Of a DNA stretch of 62,119 nucleotides, positions 14,501 to 59,100 are shown in pieces. The notes beneath the pieces were generated by a model. That model was not told the DNA's origin. It made no database searches and was given only the letters and a program-made list of their open reading frames with translations. The position numbers and the translations under genes were made by a program. This DNA is from Gracilinanus agilis. Taxonomy: Eukaryota. How positions within the stretch are numbered: the first letter of the stretch is position 1; the number at the start of each line of letters is the position of its first letter. The stretch is taken from assembly GCF_016433145.1 (NCBI RefSeq), contig NC_058132.1:28975890-29038008 (forward strand), read 5' to 3'.

Positions 14501-17500
14501 GTCCCGATCCTCCTGGAGATGGATGGAAGCTCCTAGGGGCTGGGATGGCAAGCGATGGGCTGGGCTGGGGGAGGGCAGGGCCTCAAGGTCACTGCCCTGA
14601 GTGGGGCAGCCTCCAGCTCAGTTTCCCCCGGGGACCCCAGAACCCTGTCCCCTCCCCCCCAGCCTCCTTCTCATTTCAGCTCGACTCAGGATCCCCCACT
14701 GGTCCCGGATGCTGCATCTCCAACCCCCACCCCATCCGTAGCTCCCTCAGGGCCCCCTTGGGACTGGTGGTGCCTGGGAGGGGTGCCCTTAGGACCATAG
14801 GCACACTCCTGGGTATTCCCAGCTCCTTCAGCTTTAGAGCCATTTTAGAGCCCACTTTTCCCCAAGAAACCCCAGCCACACCCCCTTCTCTCATTCCCAT
14901 CCCTGCCCCACAAACCCTGGACCCCTGCGGAACACGGATCATCGGCCGGGCCCTCCCGAGGTAACTGAGACGGCTTTCCTCCTGCAGCTGCCGCCGCCTC
15001 TGCCTCCTCCTCGCCTGCTGCTGATGCCCCTACTCCTCCCCTCCCTTCCCTCCCAGGCCCCAGGCCCCACCCCACCACTCCCCTCCCCAATCCCAGGGTC
15101 CCTGCCTTGCTGATCCCTGGCCGGGGGCTTGGCCTGCCAGGGCTCCCAGGGGAGGTGGGGGGTTGTGCTTAGCTTTGCCTGCAGGGGAGATGGGCCAGCT
15201 CGATAGGCTGACAGACTCTCCTCTCCCACTCCCCAGGTCGTTGTCTCCTCTCCAGGCCCAAGTCCCTGGTGGGCAGCGGACCCTCCACCCGCCTCCTGTC
15301 CCTAGAGGAGGCTCAGGCTCGGTCACAGGGTCGGCTATCTGCACAGGGGGCCAAGGCCGCTCCTCCACCTGAAGACCGGTGAGTAACAGGGTGGCAGCAA
15401 GGAAAGGGGAAGATGGGCCCTGGCCCAGACACCATCCTGTCTCACACCTGTGCCCCATCTAGGAGGAAGGGGGTCATTGGGGAGAAGTGGCGGAAACCAG
15501 GTGGCAGCAGCTGGAAGACCTTCTTTGCCCTGGGCAGGGGCCCCTCCTCAGTCCGAAAGAAACCCTTGCCCTGGCGTGGAGCTGGCCAAGGGTCCCAGCC
15601 ACCCCAAGGTGAGCAGGTGCATGGGCCCAAGGTGGGCGGACAGGAAGGGTAGTTTGGGGCCTTTGTAGCCAACACTTTTCCTGCCCCTTCTGGAAATCCA
15701 GGTGGCCCAGCAGAAACCGCCCCACTTCGATCAGCCAAGAGTGAGGAGTCACTGTCATCCCAGGCCAGTGGAGCTGGTGAGGATGCCCTGGGGGTGGCCT
15801 CCCTGGGGATCACAGTCTGTGGGGAAGGAAGGAGGGAGGGAAATTGGAGCATCTTCAGATCTAATTCAGTTCAGCCAGAGCAGATAACGTCAGTGTTCCA
15901 TATAGACTGGGCCTGAGCTGGAGGAGGGTTATTGGAAAAGGATCATCAGAGCTGGGAGGAGGCCCAGAGGTCATCCAGGCCAAGGCCCTGATGCTACTGG
16001 GGGAGGCCCTAAGAGTTATCCAAGTCACACAGCTAGTGAGAGGCAGAGCAGCTCCCTAAACTCCAGCTCTGTCCCCACAGATATCCCAGCAGAAGGGAAT
16101 TGTGGTCAAGCCTTGATGTGGAAACTGCCCGGGGGAGAGAGCTGATCCCTGGTGTAGGGAGAGCAGGGATGTGGGACAGGAGCAATAGCAGAGAGGAGTC
16201 TGTCTCCCTCTAGGGGAGGCTTAGGAGTGGAAATCAGAAAAAGATCCTGGAGTTAGCCCTTGAAGGGCCTAGAATGGCATTGTGAGGCTCTGCCCTTCTT
16301 TAGGCCGTGGGGAGCCAGGCAAGGGTCTTCCAACTGAGGAGATGGTCAACTGTTTGGGTTTCAAGCCTTGCTCTGCCAAGTGCTAACTGGGTGGTGAACT
16401 CTTCCCCTCTCTGGGACTCAGTTTCCCTGTTTGTACAATTGGGCAGGGGCGGGGGTGGACAGGTTGTCTGCCCCCAAGCCCTGTGAACGACACTGACTAT
16501 TTGATTCCATTCAAGTGTCCTGGGCAGAGGGGTTACCAAGATTTGAAAAAATGACCCAGCCCCTACTTTAAGGAGCTTCCATTGTCCTGGAAGTAAGGAG
16601 TAGGCCTGGGTGGGCATAGAGAGCTGACCACAGACCATAGCATGAGGCCAAGGGGGAGCCAGCCAGGGCACTTTCAGAGAACAGGGCCAGGAGCAGGTCA
16701 GGCTTTACTGCTGAGAGAGCTGCCTGAGCTCACCGTGGAGGACAAGAAGGATGGGAGCTGGAAAGGCAAAGATGAGTTCACTCCTCACCCGGGGATGCAA
16801 ACGGCTGCTCCCTGGCTGATCTGGGCCTCTCGGGTGAAGGGAGCAGCCCCAGGGATCACCCTAGGTTAGCGCAATAGCCCATCACTGGAGACTTGGGGTT
16901 GGGGAGTGAAGAGTCAACAAAGGAGAAGACCCCAAATTAGGAGAGTAAATGCTGAGGGGAAGGGACAGACCTTACAGAAGTAATGCCACCACCACCTAGA
17001 TGGGTTGAGAAGTCGGGCAGAGGGGCAGGGAGTGGCATTGGGTCCCACTTGCACAGCGGACATTGAGGTAGAAAGAGGCCACCAGGGAGATGGTGGGCTC
17101 CCAGAGATTGGGGCTCTTTGGAGATGCTATAGCCTGGCAGCCCATCCATACAAAGGGAGCCAGAACCAGCGGCCTCCAGAGCAACCCTTCCTCTTGGCTC
17201 CCTGCAGGCCTCCAGAGGCTGCACCGGCTGCGCCGGCCCCGCTCCAGCAGTGATGCCTTCCCTGTGGCTCCAGGCCTGGCCGGCTCCTGTGAGAGCCTCT
17301 CTTCTAGCACCTCTTCAGCCTCCTCCACCACCACTTCCTCTGTGGGGAGTGGAGAGCTGGTGGGGTCCCCTCCACATCGCGTTTCAGCCTGGCTGGATGA
17401 TGGCGATGACCTGGACTTCAGCCCCCCTAGGTGTCTGGAGGGGCTGAGGGGCCTCGACTTTGATCCCCTCACTTTCCGATGCAGCAGCCCTACCCCTGGG

Positions 17501-20068: not shown

Positions 20069-23000
20069 TCAGCTCCTTGGCTTGGGGGGCCCTGAGGGAC
20101 AGAACCAGAGATGCCACGGCTGAGCCACATTCCCCAGGCCTGCTCTTCAAGGCCTCAGGAACCCCCATGGGCCAGGGTTTGGGGAATGTTTGTTCATACA
20201 GGTCTTGTCTGTGCTCCCCCCCACCATCCCTCACCTCATCCCCCCACCTCACCCTGTAGTTCTGTGATGATCTCCTCTAGCAGGTCTAGCCTGGGGGAGG
20301 GGGGACAACATAAAAGGCTGGCGTCATGATGGAGACCCCTCAAGGAAACGGAAAATGCTTGGGGGCTGGAGAAGGGACTGCCAGCTACTTACTTCTGCAG
20401 GCTGGTGAAGGGGCCTTCCTTGGCCAGCTCAGGGACCAGCACCTGGCAGGGAAGGGACAAAGGCTGCGCTTCAAGTCCATATGACCTGTGCTACACGGAG
20501 ATGATTCCCAGCTGGGGCGCCAGGAGGGAGGACCCTGGCAAGGCGGCCCCCCCAGAGCTTGTGGGGCCTTCCAAGCCCCAGGAGGGCAGACACTGCCCCT
20601 TCTTTCTCTGCATCCCTAGATCCCACAGGGGAAGGCCCTCCAAGGTCCCCTCAGGCGGCCCCTTCATTTTGTTGTGGTCGGGGAGCGTAGGAGGGACCCG
20701 ACTCCATTCAGCGTCGAACACAGGCTGGATGTGTGTGCACTGCTCACCTTTAAGCCCCACCAATGCACATTCCTTCTTCCTAATCCCAAAACAACTGGTG
20801 CTCCTCATACTACCTATCTTTCAGGGCACTGACAACAGGAGGGAAGTGAGGAGGGCAGCCTCTTCATTCCTTTGTCCGAGGGAGGTGGGGCGGTCAGTCA
20901 ACTCTAGAAGCCTCCTCCCCAGGCCCAGAGCCTCCACACAAGCGCCAGCGCTGAGGGCTCCCTCTAAGGCCTCTGAGCTCTGCAGGCCACTCCAGGCCTA
21001 CAAGCCCTGGGAGGAAAGGAGCACGTAGGAAGTGGACCCCTTCTGATCACAGCCTCCTTGTCCCCGGCCCCCAGATCCCTACCTGGGTCCGACCCTCCTG
21101 TCTGTCCAGGTTTCGGGCCCGGGCTGCAAGGTCTATGCACTCCTGAAGACTGGGGCCACCTGGGGGCAAGGGGAAGGTCCTCAATCACTGAGGAGGAGGA
21201 AGGCCTTTGTCCTCGCTCCCCTCCTCACTTACTCTGGGGACAGGCGGACTGGGATGTCGGGGCCTCTGGGCTGTCTCCCAGCAGCTCCTGCAGGGTCCGG
21301 ATCCTGGCTGAGAACCTTCTCTCCAGCCTCTCCAGGGAGCCCTGGGCCTGGCCCAGCAGGCAGGCCGACTCTCTCAGACTGGTCAGCAGCGACGGCCTCT
21401 GACAAGAGCAGAGGGAGGGCCTGGGTCAATGGCCGGGCAGTGAGCAGGCAGCAGGAGAGGGCAGGAGGAAGGGCCAGGGCAGGCAGCCGGCCCTACTACC
21501 TCAGTGCAGGCGGCCTTCCTGCCCTCCGCTGACGACTCTTCGTCTGGCTGGGACGTGAGGCTCAGGCTGCTCCCTAGAGTCAGGCTGCTGCCCGAGTCCA
21601 AGGCTGGGGAGCTCCAGGTGTTCTCCCAGGCCCCGCTGCTCCCCGGGGACTTCAAGGCCTAGACGGGAAATGGAGGAACGCGGGGCCTCCTCTCTGCGCC
21701 CCCGGCCGCCCCCGCCCCGCCCTCGGTCTCCCTCCCACCAACAGCCCCATTACCTCGGATGGCTTGGGGTTGGGGACCGTCTTGGGGGACGGAGGCCTAG
21801 GTGTGCTAGTGACCTTGGGCTGCGCCTCCAACAGCGGCTCTGTGTGCGGGGGGCAAGGTAAATGGCGGCAGCCCGGCGGGGGGTCGCCCCCCCTGCCCAC
21901 GTGCCCCTCCTTACCAGGCGGCGGGGGGCTCTTTGGCTCCGAGGAGGGGCTCCCCAGAGAAGTTTCCTGGAGTGCCGACTCCTGGGGACGAGATGGCCTG
22001 TCAGCACCCGGCGGGTCCTGCCTGCCCCCCATTGCGCTTCATCCCCCAGTCCAGCGTCTACCTGAGCCAGCGCCACCCTCAGCTTGTAGCGGGCGTCCTG
22101 CAGGCTGCCCTTTCGGTCTCGAGCCCACAGCCCCAGGCCGGCCTTGACCAGAGACTGGTAGGCCGGGGGAACCCGGGCCTCCAGAGGCGGCCCCTCCCCA
22201 GACTCCAGCTTCGCCTTGACCTGCAGGCCTTCCTGTCCGGCCCAGGGAAGGTTTCCTGTGGCAGCACATTGAGGGGGGCAGGAACAGGAAGAAGAAAGCG
22301 CTCATCAGGGGTGCGGGGAGGTTGGGCAGGGGGAGACGCCCAGTTGGGGTGGCCGGAGACCCATCACTAACCAGTAAAGACCTCTTGGGCCAGGATGCAG
22401 AAGCTGTAGAAGTCGGACGTCAGGGTCGGGGCTTCGCCTCGAATCAGCTCCAGCGGTAACCAGGGGTACAGCTCGGAGGGTGGAGGCGGCCCCGGGCTGG
22501 GGCCTCCCCAAGGAAACGCTCTCTCTGGTCTGCGGAGCCAGAGGGAGGGGGTGAGCCGGCTGTGTGCAGGATGCTGGGGGTGGGGGACGGGCAGGGCAGA
22601 CGGGCCGGAGGTCACTCACTGGGGCCGGGGCAGGGCCCGCCCGTGTTCCAGGTGGCTGACTTTGACCAACCCCGGTCGGACCAGCTGGACTGCGTGGGAG
22701 CTGAGGCCGCCATGGGCCCGGGCCTGGCCTTGGAGGTAGAGCAGGGCCTCCAGCACCTGTAACAGCAGCTGCCCTGGGGAGAAGCCGGGGGGAATCCTGG
22801 GGCAGGAGGCGTCCTGGTGGGGAGAGAGGGCAGCGTCCAACTGCGGCCACCTCTCTGGAGTGGTCATGATGCTGGGCCGAGAGCTCACCCCACTATCTCC
22901 TCCAAGCCCGGGAGAAGGCAGGCCAGGCTCTCCTCCCGTCCCCCAGCCACAGCGCAGCCACGCCAGGCCCTGGCCAGGCTCTCCTCCCACTTCCCCGGTG

Positions 23001-25623
23001 CCGCAGGAGCCCCAAAGTGCGCCCCGACAGGAAGCTGCCTGATGGCCCGGCTCCTCGCTCCCCCTGCCCGCCCCCTCCGTGGCTCCAGGGAAGGCCCTGT
23101 GGAGCCGGGCACTACTCACCCCTGGGGGGTGTAGCACGAGGTGCAGGGAGCCCTCCTGGATGGGCTCAAACAGGAGGCACAGGCCAGAGAGGTCCGGGGA
23201 GGGGCTGAGGGCCATGAGCAGCAGCAGGTTGGGATGGTGAAGGAGGCTGTGGGAGGCAGGAGGACGCTGGGGCCGACTCCCAGGGGTCTGGGCCCTCCTC
23301 CCCGCCCCCTCCCCTGCTGGCCCCAGAACTCTCCGAGCACAGCGCCTGGCACAGCGCCTGGCACGCGGCGGCCCCACACGTTTAGGGACCAAACCCGAGC
23401 AGTACCTGCAGTGCTTCAGGTCGGACAAAAGCAGGTCTGGGAGCGCCGGGGCTGGGGGTGGCTTCAGTTTCCGCACGGTCACTGGGTGTCCCCTCCACAG
23501 GAGGCTTTGGGACACAAGAGCAAGATCAGGGGACAAGAGGCGGCCCAGGGAGGGGGGGGGCTGCAGAGGTACATGGCAGGGGGTGGGGGACCCTGCTGGG
23601 TTTAGGGGAGGATGGCCAGAAGGACGCTGCTCTGATGGGCCTTTCAGCTCTCTCACTTGACCATGATGGTGTGGGTGCCGCACTCATAGGTCCGATCAGG
23701 CTCCCCCTGTGCTGGCAGCAGCTCCTCAGGATCAACCAGGGGAACCCCAGATGTGAGCCCCAGAGGCCTCAGACTGCTCAGCTTGGGAGAAGGGGAGAAA
23801 CCCCATTCAGCTAGGCCCAGTTGGAGGCCCTTGGCCTCTCCCCTTCCTTCTCCTCTTCCATGAGTCGCTCCTACTTACCTGGCCAAACCCCAGTCCTGGG
23901 ACCTGGGGAGACCTCTGGACTTGCTGGGGCCACAGTGACCTGGGGGTGGGAGGGAGGTCAGCACCCAGCAGGTGCTCTTTCCCCCAGGGATAATGGGAGA
24001 AGGGTCCAGGCAGGGCAGGTGAAGGAATAAGCAGCATCAGCTATTACCCTTCAGCCTGAGGCAGGAGCTGGGAAGGCAGGGTCAGGTGGAGGCTTCCCAG
24101 GGATCCAGCCCGGAACCCCCACAGCTCCCCCAAGGACGAAGCCAGTGCAGTCTCACCCCCCTGGGCCAGCAGGGCCATTCTGGCTCGGCATTCTCGAAGC
24201 AGCTCCAAGACCTAGAGGGTGCGGCATGGGACAGGTAGGGCCAAAGAGGCATGTTCAGTGGCGCCAAGCCTTATGGGACTGGCAGCTTTCAGGTATCAAA
24301 GGGGACGTTGGGGGCTGACCCAGGATTTCATGGGGACGGGGCCTCCTAGTGTGGAAACACCTGCTCCCTGCTCTGAATTCTTGGTCTTGAGAGTTGCTTC
24401 TGAGAGGTTCTTCCCGAGTCCCACCCAGCAAAAGGCAGCCTAGGCTGGCCTGGCCTAGACAGAGCCAGGGCCCACTTCTGCCTCGTCCTGGCAGCTCAGG
24501 GATCACTTCTACAAGCAGAAATGGCAGAAAGATGCTGCCTTTGGAACGGTGGAGAGCATGTCCTCATCCTGGAGGTCCCCGATACTCATGAAATCTCGGG
24601 TGTCGTCTGTCCCCATCCCCCATGAGATTGGACCTGGACCCCATCTTCCTGTCTCTGTGGCCAGCTCTAACTGCTATTCTGAGTCATTTTGTCTTCAAAT
24701 GGAATTTATTAGTATTAAATCAGATATATCCAGAGTCCCACCCCATCCCCATCTTTTGTCAGACCCTGCCCTAATGCCACACACACACACACACACACAC
24801 TCACTTCCCAGCTCTCTGCTCCAGCCTGCTGGGCCCAGTCCTCTGCTGTCCAGCCCTGCTGGTCATGCAGTCTCAGGTCTCCTCCAGCCTCCAGCAGCCA
24901 GAGCATGACCTGGCAGTGGCCAGAGAAAGCTCCTGCATGGACTGGGGTACTTCCATCCAAGCATCGGCTGTGGGGAAGAGACAAAGAGAGGGACACTGAG
25001 GCACTGGGGGAGAGACCAACGGGAAGGTAAGGAACTGGAAGAGAGGGGAGCTGGAGATGAAGGGAGCCAGATGACACCCTTGGAGGGGGGCATCACAGAA
25101 GAGCTTGGCTTTGGGGCTGAGGAACTCACTGGTTGGGGTCTGCTCCAAAGCGGAGAAGAAGTTTGACAAAAGCTGCCCGGCCCAGCAATGCTGACAGGAA
25201 GAGGCTGGTCTGACCCGATGAGTTTTCTCCATCCACCTGTACCCCTGGGGGGCAAAGGAGGAGGGGAAAGAAGGGGCAGGAAGCCTCTGGATGGGCATGC
25301 TGGCACTTTCCACGGCACTGCCCACCCAAAAGATTCTCTCCATGTCTGATCAACAAGTAACTTCTGTGGATCCCATGCCCACATCTCCCTCTGCCAACAA
25401 ATCCCCCTAAACTCCATGACCAGTCTGTATGCCCTTCCCCAGCCCCCCCCCCCCCACTGCATATCCATGCTGGGCACCTCCAAGAGTCACCTTTTTTGAG
25501 CAGTCGGGCCAGCCGCCAGCAGGGTCCCCCAGCAATGGCCAGTCGGTGTAGCTGGGCCAGGGGGCTATCCTGCTCACTCAAGGAACCCAGCTTGATAGGG
25601 CACTGAGGGGGGAGGGTGGGCAT
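20069..25623 (-). CDS. TEX14-like protein: N-terminal ankyrin repeats, pseudokinase domain, low-complexity/coiled-coil tail (~742 aa)
   Basis: Coding exons (high to low): 25623-25491, 25244-25130, 24967-24805, 24211-24048, 23939-23879, 23781-23657, 23504-23406, 23246-23120, 22813-22620, 22559-22372, 22255-22062, 21981-21915, 21839-21754, 21658-21500, 21398-21233, 21159-21083, 20442-20393, 20290-20253, 20091-20069. All are GT-AG, phases are consistent and the total is 2229 nt with no internal stop. CPIKLGSL..AQLH, GQTSLFLSALLG, HRCLDGSTPVHAGAFSG and LLEAGGDLRLHD closely match TEX14 as recalled. The last ~6 exons are less certain. Confidence 0.88.
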
Positions 25624-50352: not shown

Positions 50353-50497
50353 NNNNNNNNNNNNNNNNNNNNNNNNNNNNNNNNNNNNNNNNNNNNNNNN
50401 NNNNNNNNNNNNNNNNNNNNNNNNNNNNNNNNNNNNNNNNNNNNNNNNNNNNNNNNNNNNNNNNNNNNNNNNNNNNNNNNNNNNNNNNNNNNNNNNN
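50353..50497. other. Assembly gap (145 N)
   Basis: Run of N; both flanks look like the 5' UTR of the same minus-strand L1. Confidence 0.99.
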
Positions 50498-56114: not shown

Positions 56115-59100
56115 ATGCTTTCGGGCCACTTCCTTCTGCTGCTCCTTCTCCTGGGCTCCAGTGCAGGTACGGGATAGGAAGTGAGCGGAGGGGTAGCGCT
56201 CTCTCCGCGAGCCTCATTTTCCTTTCCAGTTCTTCCAGCTCTGGTGGGGCGGGGGGCAGGCCTCAGAGCCAGCAGCACCAGCTCTAGGGCTCTGGGGGGG
56301 GAGGACAGAGACCAGGGAAGGGGACAGGTCCGAAGCTGGGTCCTGGGGGAAGGGACCAGTGCACCGGAATTCTGTTACCTTCCACAGAAGAGCACTGAGA
56401 CTGGGGCCAAGGGAGAGGAGAGGGTGAGGTCTAGTTCTGCTCCCACCCTACCTACCTTAGGGGAGAGGTCTGGCCTTTCCAAGCCTGGCCGGGGGCCTGA
56501 GGAAGGTTGGGCTCCCTGCAGCTCCCTGAGAAGCTCTTGATTGTCTTTCTCCTCTGCCAGGCCATGCTCCCCATTTCCTACAGCAGCCTGAAGACCTGGA
56601 GGTTGTCCTGGGGGAGGAGGCCACGCTCCCCTGTGTCCTCAGCGGCTATCATGGTTTGGTTCAATGGACAAAAGATGGACTAGCCCTGGGGGGTGAACGG
56701 GATCTGCCTGGTGAGAAGAAGCCTCAGGAGTGATTTAGGGGCTGGAGCATCTCTGGAAAGGGGATTAGAGAAGTCTTGGCTGCACTGGGCTTTGGAAATC
56801 TGAACCTTCTCCCTTTGGTTACATGGCTCTCCCAGGGTGGTCCCGGTACTGGATCTCTGGAGACAGGGCCACTGGCCACCATGACCTGCACATCGGGGCA
56901 GCTGAACTGGGCGACGAAGCATCCTACGAGTGTCAGGCCACCCAGGCCGCTCTTCGCTCCCGACCGGCTCGGCTCCAGGTACTTGGTGAGTGATACGTGA
57001 TCCCTTTTCTAGCTGGGACTCTTTGGGGCATTTGTCCCAACTCACTGGTCCAACCTCACACATTTGGCCTCCAGGACTCAAGAACTGGTCCCCCATGTAT
57101 TGCTTCAAGGTCCCAAGTGTTTGCCTCCTCTATTGCTAACTATGTGTGCCCGTACAAGGCACAGGATGGGGTCTCTGATGAAACAGGGAGGGCTGGGGCT
57201 CACTGTTCTGCTTTTCTCCTTAGTTCCCCCAGAAGCACCTGAAGTGTTAGGGGCTCCAACGGTGGCTCTGGTCGCTGGGGTTCCTGGGAATCTGACCTGC
57301 CGGACCCGAGGTGGAGCTCGACCGATGCCTGAGCTGCTCTGGTTTCGGGATGGGGTCCGTCTGGAAGGAGCCACTTACAGCCAGGTCAGATTATAATCTG
57401 GAGCTGCCTCCCTCACAGCATGGAGAGGACAGAATGTTCTGTGGAAACTTTTGCAAGCTGTTGGGTAACAGCGACCTCTCCAGGGGATGAGAATCCAGAG
57501 ATAAATTGGGCTCTTTCCTCACTGAGGGTCAAAGAAGTCAACCACCCTTAACCCCCTTCCCTTTTTCCACCCCCCAGACTCTGCTGCCCAGTGGGATCCT
57601 GGGAGCAGTGGAGAGCTCTCTCTCAATCACTCCCTCTGCCCAGGATGACGGTGCCTCTTTCATCTGCCAGGCCCGAAGCCCAGCCTTGCCCAGGGGGAAA
57701 GACACTAAGGTCACCCTCAGCCTGCAGTGTGAGAACTGGACATCTGGGATCTGTGGGGGATTTGAAGGGCTCTTGGACAAGGAAGCAAGGGATGTTGGGC
57801 AACTCCTGCTTTACTCTGACTACAATCTCCTTCCATCTCCTAGATCCCCCAGTGGTGACCCTTTCTGCTGAGCCACAGACTGTGCCCGAGGGTGGGAAGG
57901 TCACATTTCTGTGCAGAGCAACAGCCCACCCCCCAGTCATTGGCTACAGGTGAGCCTACAAAACAGTGGGACTCTCAAGACTCCGTACTTGAGGCCCCCA
58001 CCAATACTGAGCCTTCCCATCCCCCAGGTGGGCAAAAGGGGGATCTGTGCTGCCTGGAGCTCGAGGGCCCCTTTTAGAGGTGAAAGCTGATGCTTCCTTC
58101 CTGACTGAACCTGTGTCCTGTGAGGCTACCAATGCCGTGGGCAGCACCAATCGGAGCACAGCATTGGATGTGCAGTGTGAGTAGAGGGGCAAGACCTCTT
58201 GTCTCCAAAGGGGCTGTGACTGGGATGTTCCTAGTGTCTGGGTCCCTACAGCAGGTAAAGAAGCTGTCTTCTTGAGGCAGCTGGGTAGCTCAGTGAATCA
58301 AGAGCCTGGCCTAGAGATCCAGGCTTCAAATCTGGCCTCAGACACCTCCTAGCTGGGTGACCCTGGACAAGTCACTTCACTCCCATTGCCTAGCCCTTAC
58401 TGCTCTTCTGCCTTGGAACCAATACAGAGTATTGATTCTAAAACGAAAATTAAGGGTTTTTAAAAAAATCTATCATGCAGGGCTTCCTGCAGGGCTTGGG
58501 AGGACTGTGAGGCCCTCCTGATGCCTTGAGGCACTCTCAAAGCCTAGAGGTGGCTGGGCAGCTTAGGAGGGCTGCAGCCTGGGTCCTCCTAGCCTCACTG
58601 ACAGCCTCCTTTAACCTCTAGTCGGTCCTCTCCTCCTTTCTCCGCCTGAGCCACTGGCGGTGGATGTGGGGGAAGACGCCTCCTTCACCTGCACCTGGAA
58701 GGGAAACCCACCCCCACGAGTAACCTGGGTCCGTCATGGGGGGTCGAAGGTAAGGGACAGAGTGAGGGGCAGGGCCAGGGCTCTGGATTTAGCCCATTTT
58801 CTCCTTCCCATCTCCCCTAACCCACTCGTCTTGTGTCCACAGATCCTCAGTTCTGGGCCCACCTTGCGTCTGGTGTCCGTGGGGCCCGGAGACTCGGGAA
58901 GCTACCAGTGTCGGGTGGAGCCAGGACCTTCAGGAATGGGGGGCGGCCTGGGGGAGGCCACCTTGACTGTGCACGGTGAGCAGAGGTTGGGGGCAGGCCA
59001 GAGGGCAGGGGGTAGAGAAGCCTGGGTGAGGGCCAGAGAGGCCCTGACTGCACCTTGAATCCTCCCAGGCCCCCCGGCAGTGACTGCCCTGCACTCGCCT

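Follow-up and report, generated by a model that had tools for sequence, protein, structure and literature searches.

The TEX14-like gene between PRODH2 and ARHGAP33 in the marsupial Gracilinanus agilis: an intact, constrained gene for a putative pseudokinase scaffold

Because it keeps germ cells connected, TEX14 is indispensable for male fertility, and a gene resembling it in a marsupial genome raises the question of whether this is TEX14 itself, a decayed relative, or a second working member of the family. The gene lies on the minus strand at 20069-25623 of a 62,119-nucleotide stretch of Gracilinanus agilis DNA (contig NC_058132.1, positions 28,975,890 to 29,038,008), referred to here as the window; coordinates are those of the window unless a locus of another species is named. 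The evidence indicates, at a probability we put at about 0.85, that this is the didelphid-marsupial ortholog of the gene annotated as TEX14-like (here TEX14L) and in mouse as Arhgap33os (formerly Gm1082), that it is intact, spliced, transcribed and constrained, and that its product may act as a pseudokinase scaffold. The gene is already known through public annotation under these two names and is functionally uncharacterized.

The reading frame runs from an ATG at 25623 to a TGA whose last base is 20069 (TGA 20071-20069). An exon model built with the Antechinus ortholog (P0061, tblastn) as a guide and with RNA junctions has 19 exons, GT and AG at the borders of 18 of 18 introns, and a coding sequence of 2199 nucleotides that specifies 732 amino acids plus the stop, with no internal stops. 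The protein opens with three ankyrin repeats (residues ~30-135); a linker leads to a kinase-like domain (~240-510), and a Ser/Pro-rich segment then precedes three short C-terminal motifs that are helical and conserved. The region from 20 to 26 kilobases (kb) has a GC (guanine plus cytosine) content of 59-67% and long stop-free stretches in all frames, making a mechanical list of open reading frames uninformative; read on the minus strand from the ATG at 25623, three short ankyrin-repeat exons with clean GT/AG borders come first.

An earlier, sequence-only reading of the window had already drawn an intact second TEX14-family gene with these limits and 19 exons, both of which the rebuilt model matches exactly, and with ankyrin repeats, a kinase-like domain and a helical tail, an architecture confirmed in the spliced frame. 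Its single uninterrupted open reading frame also stands, at 732 rather than the proposed ~742 amino acids (about 10 shorter). It had placed the gene between ARHGAP33 and PRODH2, called it a paralog rather than the one-to-one ortholog of a TEX14 that is about twice as long and lies elsewhere, and named spliced transcripts and the ratio of nonsynonymous to synonymous change (dN/dS) across marsupials as checks; the loci, trees, RNA and codon comparisons that follow bear it out on each of these points.

The longest stop-free stretch (22619-23683, minus strand, 355 amino acids) served as bait against 1.84 billion representative proteins. It matched a 725-amino-acid wombat protein at 85% identity, along with 54 further proteins. 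A PDB sequence search with the same stretch returned antibody matches, rejected as spurious and caused by translated introns. Searching with the wombat protein recovered records automatically annotated as 'inactive serine/threonine-protein kinase TEX14-like' in eight marsupials, many eutherians, turtles and squamates. The eutherian records include rat, cow ('gene model 1082-like') and Mus spicilegus ('Rho GTPase activating protein 33, opposite strand', i.e., Arhgap33os), and the annotation extends over rodents, carnivores, artiodactyls, bats, xenarthrans, lemurs and lorises; lungfish, newt, caecilian, coelacanth and the ray Mobula also carry the gene. The earlier reading was right to suspect that the gene may already be auto-annotated, as TEX14-like in many genomes and under the Arhgap33os and Gm1082 names in Mus and Bos. 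It understated the spread when it spoke of retention in marsupials and loss in some eutherians, given annotation across eutherians, reptiles, amphibians, lungfish, coelacanth and a ray: tetrapods as a rule keep the gene, and its retention is no marsupial peculiarity.

The window protein is 91% identical to the Monodelphis TEX14-like isoform X1, 86% identical to the Dromiciops protein and 58-62% identical to eutherian orthologs. The annotated genes of Monodelphis domestica (XP_056681268), Dromiciops gliroides (P0060) and Mus spicilegus are the same gene in the same PRODH2/ARHGAP33 slot, with the same diagnostic residues and C-terminal motif, and the Dromiciops model has the same 19-exon structure. 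The window copy differs from them around intron 12 (21840-21914), which is 75 nucleotides long, in frame and spliced out in window RNA, whereas the Antechinus (L002 13866-14069) and Monodelphis (L003 14244-14483) models read through it and have no GT/AG at the splice sites projected onto them. The window's exon 12 is in addition 12 nucleotides shorter than that of five other marsupials.

The neighborhood tells the same story. Five marsupial loci (Dromiciops, Antechinus, Monodelphis, wombat and tammar) show a Pro_dh gene upstream of TEX14L in the same orientation and a gene with SH3 and RhoGAP domains converging from downstream, giving the order PRODH2, TEX14L, ARHGAP33. Over 26 kb the window aligns collinearly with the Monodelphis locus, and by this collinearity ARHGAP33 occupies the plus strand up to ~19.5 kb and PRODH2 the minus strand at ~30.1-33.5 kb. 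Several annotation pipelines fuse TEX14L with PRODH2, which is an independent sign that the two are adjacent.

Similarity to TEX14 itself is far beyond chance, at 36-37% identity over residues 4-518 (E ~1e-90). In the broad sense the window protein belongs to the TEX14 family, with N-terminal ankyrin repeats followed by a kinase-like domain that has neither the HRD Asp nor DFG; at 732 amino acids and outside the TEX14 clade, it is not TEX14 proper. A separate TEX14 is found in ten marsupials (Monodelphis, Sarcophilus, Dromiciops, Petaurus, Trichosurus, wombat, koala, tammar, Sminthopsis and bilby) in models of 1,129-1,523 amino acids, the full-length ones being 1,485-1,523, and in Dromiciops, tammar, bilby and opossum TEX14 and TEX14L map to separate chromosome-scale records.

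A maximum-likelihood (ML) tree of the ankyrin and kinase region, rooted with four invertebrate outgroups, resolves two clades. The TEX14L clade (support 99/97) holds ray, coelacanth, lungfish, amphibian, reptile and mammalian proteins, including that of the window; the TEX14 clade (90/83) holds teleosts, shark, ray and tetrapods, including marsupials. A first tree with a single copepod outgroup had recovered the same mammalian TEX14L clade and left the lungfish and amphibian TEX14L proteins unresolved with the amniote ones; the two clades were resolved after ray, coelacanth and three more invertebrates were added. The window protein is sister to Monodelphis TEX14L in both trees (100/98 in the first and 100/100 in the second), and the mammalian TEX14L stem is long, at 0.86-1.0 substitutions per site.

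The ray Mobula hypostoma has one gene in each clade (P0053 and P0040), on different records, which makes the TEX14/TEX14L duplication older than the split between cartilaginous and bony vertebrates. Such an age would fit the genome duplications early in vertebrate history. Proteins of the same ankyrin and kinase-like layout from abalone, barnacle and copepod form the outgroup (P0044, P0049, P0037 and P0051), so the family is older than vertebrates. TEX14 and TEX14L therefore have a common origin in a single invertebrate-type gene and still share the N-terminal 'CPxxLG', three ankyrin repeats (with GGDLRLHD among them) and a kinase fold that is dead in both, having neither the HRD Asp nor DFG, but they have been in separate clades since before sharks and bony vertebrates parted, lie on different chromosomes and differ in length (732 versus ~1500 amino acids).

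The gene is under purifying selection in marsupials. When the 19 exons were projected onto the same five marsupial loci, exons 1-11 kept the same lengths, conserved AG/GT flanks and freedom from stops in all six species. Pairwise dN/dS over these exons (511 codons, six species) is 0.055-0.22, with an ML omega of 0.136; over the tail (221 codons, four species) it is 0.21-0.34, with an omega of 0.19, all far below 1. The synonymous distance (dS) between the window and Monodelphis is 0.19, which points to another didelphid as the source of the window, and the range among the six marsupials is 0.19-0.56.

The gene is also spliced and transcribed. Four public runs of the same organism contain this DNA (X1-X4). 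X1 behaves as a genome run, unspliced at an even depth of ~22, and X2-X4, of 80-100 million letters each, hold spliced contigs. The RNA contigs give ten spliced joints, all CT..AC on the plus strand and so GT..AG for a minus-strand gene, and at the exon 6/7 junction a contig end at 23504 runs on with 17 letters starting at 23657 (23657-23673). Altogether, 11 of the 18 introns are seen directly in RNA, including every junction from exon 11 to the last exon, which fixes the frame down to the stop.

What might the protein do? Pfam searches of raw stop-free exon pieces from the window gave sub-threshold ankyrin and kinase matches (17.5 bits for the exon 10 piece). On the 86-91% identical orthologs that stood in for the window protein in database and Pfam searches (Dromiciops P0060 and Monodelphis isoform X1, P0300), Ank_2 matches at E=4e-16 and PK_Tyr_Ser-Thr at 38.0 (86% ortholog) and 40.3 bits (91% ortholog), where the cut-off is 23.1. 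Among solved structures, the kinase domains closest in sequence are those of the TKL kinases CTR1 and MLK and of the ILK pseudokinase (E=2e-5). In Dromiciops P0060, 55 positions in the span from residue 239 to residue 505 are invariant from lungfish to mammals.

The catalytic columns, fixed by aligning opossum TEX14 to the EGFR kinase, separate the two paralogs. At the beta-3 (VAIK) column TEX14 keeps the Lys (VTVKEL), whereas every TEX14L has Arg: 'VTVR.L' is present in the window protein and in 18 of 18 others compared. The helix-C Glu is kept in TEX14 and in most non-mammalian TEX14L proteins and is Asp in mammalian ones; the catalytic loop (HRD) reads HRS in TEX14, HRA in most non-mammalian TEX14L and HGG in most mammalian ones. 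Neither paralog has a DFG (the window protein reads SHL). At the APE column TEX14 has APE, within 'W(S/A)APE', and TEX14L has PLE, within a 'WLPLE' found in 16 of the 18 others; Nycticebus has WLSLE and Lissotriton WLAPE. With the beta-3 Lys, the HRD Asp and the DFG Asp all missing, TEX14L is, judged by its residues, catalytically dead, and more thoroughly so than TEX14.

A protein of this kind would be unable to phosphorylate substrates, and it is somewhat likelier to be a non-catalytic scaffold of the ILK type than to be anything else. Three of its parts would each offer a surface for binding proteins: the ankyrin repeats, the dead kinase fold and the helices at the C-terminus. ILK, the best-understood model of an ankyrin-pseudokinase protein that works without catalysis, likewise places its ankyrin repeats at the N-terminus, ahead of an inactive TKL-like kinase fold. 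It belongs to a different family, with distant similarity in the kinase domain only, and unlike TEX14L it has no long disordered tail with C-terminal helices; for its partners PINCH and parvin, no equivalent is known for TEX14L.

The tail is 41% Ser, Pro, Thr or Gly. Four motifs in it are conserved from lungfish to marsupials: DSGSSLTLGSS, SLxESAxLLxxAQxSLExLExRF, SLQxxIDLxAxAR and PFxSLQxLDLLEEIIxEL. The C-terminal 'LDL(L/M)(E/Q)EII.EL' is present in the window protein and in all full-length TEX14L tails compared, eutherians included. Marsupial, reptile and amphibian proteins keep the two middle motifs (exons 15-16), while most annotated eutherian isoforms are missing both and retain the C-terminal LDLLEEII helix (P0069, P0073, P0088 and P0098 compared with P0060, P0012 and P0017). 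In panda and slow loris a degenerate version of the first middle motif is still present, and the tails of marsupials outside Diprotodontia resemble those of reptiles and amphibians more. In wombat (L004 ~14568-14713) and tammar (L005 14563-14724), frameshifting indels interrupt exon 15, the source of the SLxESA...LERLERRF helix, and the gene models of these species skip the exon or read another frame; this suggests decay of the tail motif in diprotodonts, or assembly errors.

A further motif separates the paralogs in a way that matters for function. GPPxxxY is the motif by which TEX14 occupies the EABR of CEP55 and blocks abscission. It was found in 9 of the 12 TEX14 proteins checked (amniotes, caecilian and teleost) and in none of 19 TEX14L proteins; the window protein has three GPP triplets, none with Y at +6. 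The known TEX14 abscission block, competition for the CEP55 EABR through GPPxxxY, would then be closed to TEX14L, and any role in cytokinesis, at bridges or at kinetochores would have to stem from parts shared with TEX14, i.e., the N-terminal module and possibly one helical motif. That helix, the first in the TEX14L tail, weakly matches one about 200 amino acids past the kinase domain of TEX14 (blastp E=0.002 at best, lungfish TEX14L versus caecilian TEX14); blastp matches the same helix in several pairs, and a profile-profile comparison (hhalign) gives a weak E=0.08 over 33 columns. A shared tail helix is suggestive only.

The distribution among primates bears on function as well. A survey with a lemur query covered the best 120 of 177 matches at E<=1e-20, the weakest listed being 7e-114. 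Strepsirrhines give full-length TEX14L, and among the matches listed all platyrrhine models are truncated (Saimiri 490, Sapajus 469 and Saguinus 499 amino acids). No catarrhine TEX14L protein appears in these best 120 of 177 matches, while catarrhine TEX14 is abundantly annotated. The gene has probably been lost in catarrhines, including the human lineage, as far as annotated proteins tell. Such a loss would fit the suggestion of the earlier reading that LINC01529 is what is left of the gene in human.

Several observations pull the other way and keep the favored reading short of certainty. The transcription seen in runs X2-X4 comes from samples that have no tissue label. For introns 1-5, 9 and 10 no spliced joint was seen in the X2-X4 contigs; these introns rest on conservation, with exons 1-11 of the same lengths and AG/GT flanks in five other marsupials. 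RNA depth is ~250 over exons 17-19 and drops to 3-9 in the kinase exons and to <2 in the ankyrin exons, a steep 5' fall which means that most of the transcripts seen may be 3'-biased or short forms. The AlphaFold2 model of the Dromiciops ortholog is poor (mean predicted local distance difference test score 53.8, predicted template-modeling score 0.35, N-lobe <50), so the scaffold idea rests on sequence and not on structure; the same model has confident ankyrin repeats, a moderately confident C-lobe and a disordered tail with helices at the three C-terminal motifs. Some pseudokinases, moreover, keep nucleotide binding or atypical catalysis, which residue losses by themselves do not preclude. 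Finally, in the searchable literature Arhgap33os, Gm1082 and LINC01529 appear in expression and methylation gene lists and no functional paper was found (many of the 'Gm1082' matches are actually Gm10824 and similar names), nor was any paper using the names 'TEX14-like' or 'TEX14L'.

The unusual RNA coverage deserves a note of its own. Exons 17-19 and their junctions, at a depth of ~210-250, exceed the exon 16/17 junction (~60) and exons 12-16 (~20) by 4-10 times, and an unspliced RNA contig at 20417-21110 spans within the 640-nucleotide intron 16. The excess at 20069-21110 could reflect 3' bias, intron retention, or an internal start that gives a short 3' transcript. An X3 contig of depth 9 (22566-22812) runs from exon 9 through its donor into intron 9, where it meets an in-frame TGA at 22618-22616; it is either unspliced pre-mRNA or a retained-intron form, whose product would end inside the kinase-like domain, short of exons 10-11.

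Among the other explanations, the one that fares best keeps TEX14L close to the work of its paralog. It sees a sister of TEX14 dating from the early vertebrate (2R) duplications, maintained for >450 million years from rays to mammals, that acts as a CEP55-independent partner or modulator at the midbody, bridge or kinetochore by way of the shared module and helix and was lost in catarrhines. We regard this as a long shot. If it were true, humans would be without a germ-line or cytokinesis factor that mouse and most mammals possess.

Somewhat less plausible still is the narrower proposal made in the earlier reading, that TEX14L is the second component of a TEX14/TEX14L system that turns midbodies into stable germ-cell intercellular bridges. 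The proposal draws on the ankyrin and pseudokinase module common to both proteins, on the weak alignment of one tail helix to a TEX14 helix and on the fact that both genes are kept together in many vertebrates. The sole TEX14 element with a demonstrated bridge mechanism, however, is GPPxxxY, and it is absent from every TEX14L checked; nothing observed here connects TEX14L with intercellular bridges. Catarrhines form germ-cell bridges yet apparently do so without the gene, which indicates that TEX14L is no obligate bridge component. Mouse Arhgap33os turns up in gene lists from colon, brain microvessel, prefrontal cortex and muscle, and not in reproduction papers.

Doubtful to much the same degree, and if anything slightly more so, is a kinase-like domain that retains nucleotide-dependent or atypical catalysis and serves as an enzyme or nucleotide switch rather than as a pure scaffold. 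That the domain is the most constrained part of the protein (omega 0.14), that it holds the 55 positions invariant from lungfish to mammals, and that pseudokinases without canonical residues are established to bind ATP in some cases would all agree with such a role. Against this, the Lys and both Asp residues are missing together, mammals have gone further by changing HRA to HGG and the helix-C Glu to Asp, and the glycine-rich loop region is not recognizable in an N-lobe modeled at low confidence.

A transcribed unitary pseudogene or long noncoding RNA whose open frame is an accident of GC content is very improbable. Such a status is what the 'os' label suggests in mouse and what LINC01529, which the earlier reading puts in the corresponding interval, may have in human. 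The GC-rich surroundings with their stop-free stretches in all frames, the very low RNA coverage of the 5' half and the contigs that retain introns are what an accident of this kind could produce, but it would not keep 19 exons in frame without a stop or hold exons 1-11 to equal lengths across six marsupials at dS 0.19-0.56. The log-likelihoods are as clear: -4586.5 with omega free versus -4856.7 at omega=1 for exons 1-11, and -1779.1 versus -1844.1 for the tail, so that the omegas of 0.14 in the domains and 0.19 in the tail stand 270 and 65 units away from neutrality. None of the marks of a pseudogene (frameshifts, stops, lost splice sites or dN/dS near 1) was found in the window gene. The last alternative, that the gene is the TEX14 ortholog itself, relocated and shortened in marsupials, has only domain architecture and name similarity to offer and is refuted by the separate 1,129-1,523-amino-acid TEX14 of ten marsupials (on other chromosome-scale records in four), by the placement of the window protein in the other clade in both trees, the later one rooted with four outgroups, and by PRODH2/ARHGAP33 synteny common to eutherian TEX14-like genes (fused PRODH2 models in pig, bear and mouse lemur).

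The exons of TEX14L, all on the minus strand, follow the domain layout closely. Exon 1 (25491..25623, 133 nucleotides) holds the ATG at 25623-25621, the N-terminal 'CPxxLG...AQLH' and the start of ankyrin repeat 1; its donor reads AAG/gtgact and its length is the same in five marsupials, with no RNA junction seen. Exon 2 (25130..25244, 115 nucleotides, of conserved length) encodes an ankyrin repeat that Pfam Ank matches at E ~4e-3 on the raw piece, and exon 3 (24805..24967, 163 nucleotides) one with the GGDLRLHD motif common to TEX14 (Ank_2 E=1.7e-3 on the raw piece). The linker is divided between exon 4 (24048..24211, 164 nucleotides), a helical part behind the ankyrin repeats placed by tblastn with the Antechinus protein and of the same length in five marsupials, and exon 5 (23879..23939, 61 nucleotides), placed by homology and conserved length.

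The kinase-like domain begins with its N-lobe in exon 6 (23657..23781, 125 nucleotides), whose junction with exon 7 is in RNA. Exon 7 (23406..23504, 99 nucleotides) carries the beta-3 'VTVRKL', with Arg for the catalytic Lys, and helix C, and is joined in RNA to the next exon (23246>23406). The hinge region of the kinase fold, 'HHPNLLLLMA', is in exon 8 (23120..23246, 127 nucleotides; both junctions in RNA). Exon 9 (22620..22813, 194 nucleotides) spans the catalytic-loop region 'AHGGLSSHAV', without the HRD Asp, and 'VSHLE', without DFG; its acceptor is in RNA and its donor, CCA/gtgagt, is placed by homology and conservation. Exon 10 (22372..22529, 158 nucleotides) has the 'WLPLE' of the APE position and helix F (PK_Tyr_Ser-Thr E=2.7e-3 on the raw piece), and exon 11 (22062..22255, 194 nucleotides) ends the C-lobe, with its donor in RNA (joint 21980>22061) and contigs spanning 22061-22256.

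For the tail exons 12 to 18, RNA shows both junctions throughout. The Ser/Pro-rich segment begins in exon 12 (21915..21981, 67 nucleotides) and continues as a Pro-rich stretch in exon 13 (21754..21839, 86 nucleotides). Exon 14 (21500..21658, 159 nucleotides) encodes the 'DSGSSLTLGSS' motif conserved from lungfish to marsupials, and exon 15 (21233..21398, 166 nucleotides) the helical motif 'SLRESACLLGQAQGSLERLERRF', which is conserved in reptiles, amphibians and lungfish and predicted as a helix in the ortholog model. The conserved motif 'SLQECIDLAARAR' is in exon 16 (21083..21159, 77 nucleotides), 'PELAKEGPFTSLQ' in exon 17 (20393..20442, 50 nucleotides) and the C-terminal helix 'LDLLEEIITELQ', the most conserved tail motif of the family, in exon 18 (20253..20290, 38 nucleotides), where RNA depth is highest. 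The coding part of exon 19 (20069..20091, 23 nucleotides) has its acceptor in RNA and its frame checked through the TGA at 20071-20069. A poly(A) signal, AATAAA, follows on the minus strand at 20017-20012, 52 nucleotides past the stop.

Three features of the introns were recorded along the way. Intron 3 has a (GT)n microsatellite at 24770-24812, directly behind the exon 3 donor. At 20974, in intron 16, all four runs, the DNA run included, have C where the window has T, which is a variant or an assembly error. At 25442, in intron 1, the DNA-run contig has one extra C beside a run of ~11 C on the plus strand (G on the minus, ~25443-25453); the extra base, at a site that is not coding, is either length variation or an artefact of sequencing.

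Downstream of TEX14L, the last coding open reading frame of ARHGAP33 ends at ~19465 on the plus strand, so that it and the TEX14L stop at 20069 on the minus strand converge within ~600 nucleotides; a possible overlap of the 3' untranslated regions would explain the mouse name 'opposite strand'. On the other side, past PRODH2, a GC-rich block at 54-62 kb includes an open stretch at 58660-59058 (plus strand) with an immunoglobulin-domain match (Ig_3 E=6e-11, I-set 3e-10), which we take from human gene order to be probably an exon of NPHS1 (nephrin). A run of 145 N at 50353-50497 is an assembly gap or a masked stretch. On nomenclature, the kinome family NKF5 comprises SgK307 (TEX14) and a second member, SgK424, which may be this gene; literature searches returned nothing on SgK424 and nothing relevant on NKF5/SgK307.

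The finding confirms an existing automatic annotation and is not a discovery; what is added here is a date for the duplication, a test of selection, the family-wide loss of the beta-3 Lys, the absence of GPPxxxY, a map of the tail motifs and a probable loss in catarrhines. It also carries a warning for annotation, in that a conserved protein-coding gene can sit behind an 'opposite strand' or 'LINC' label. For the biology of the family, TEX14 has an ancient and strongly constrained sister of half its length that does not have the motif explaining how TEX14 acts. This sister is present in mouse, rat, livestock and marsupials and apparently missing in apes and Old World monkeys. With the mouse gene already named (Arhgap33os), it offers a cheap and clear target for learning what an ankyrin-pseudokinase module may do when it acts alone.

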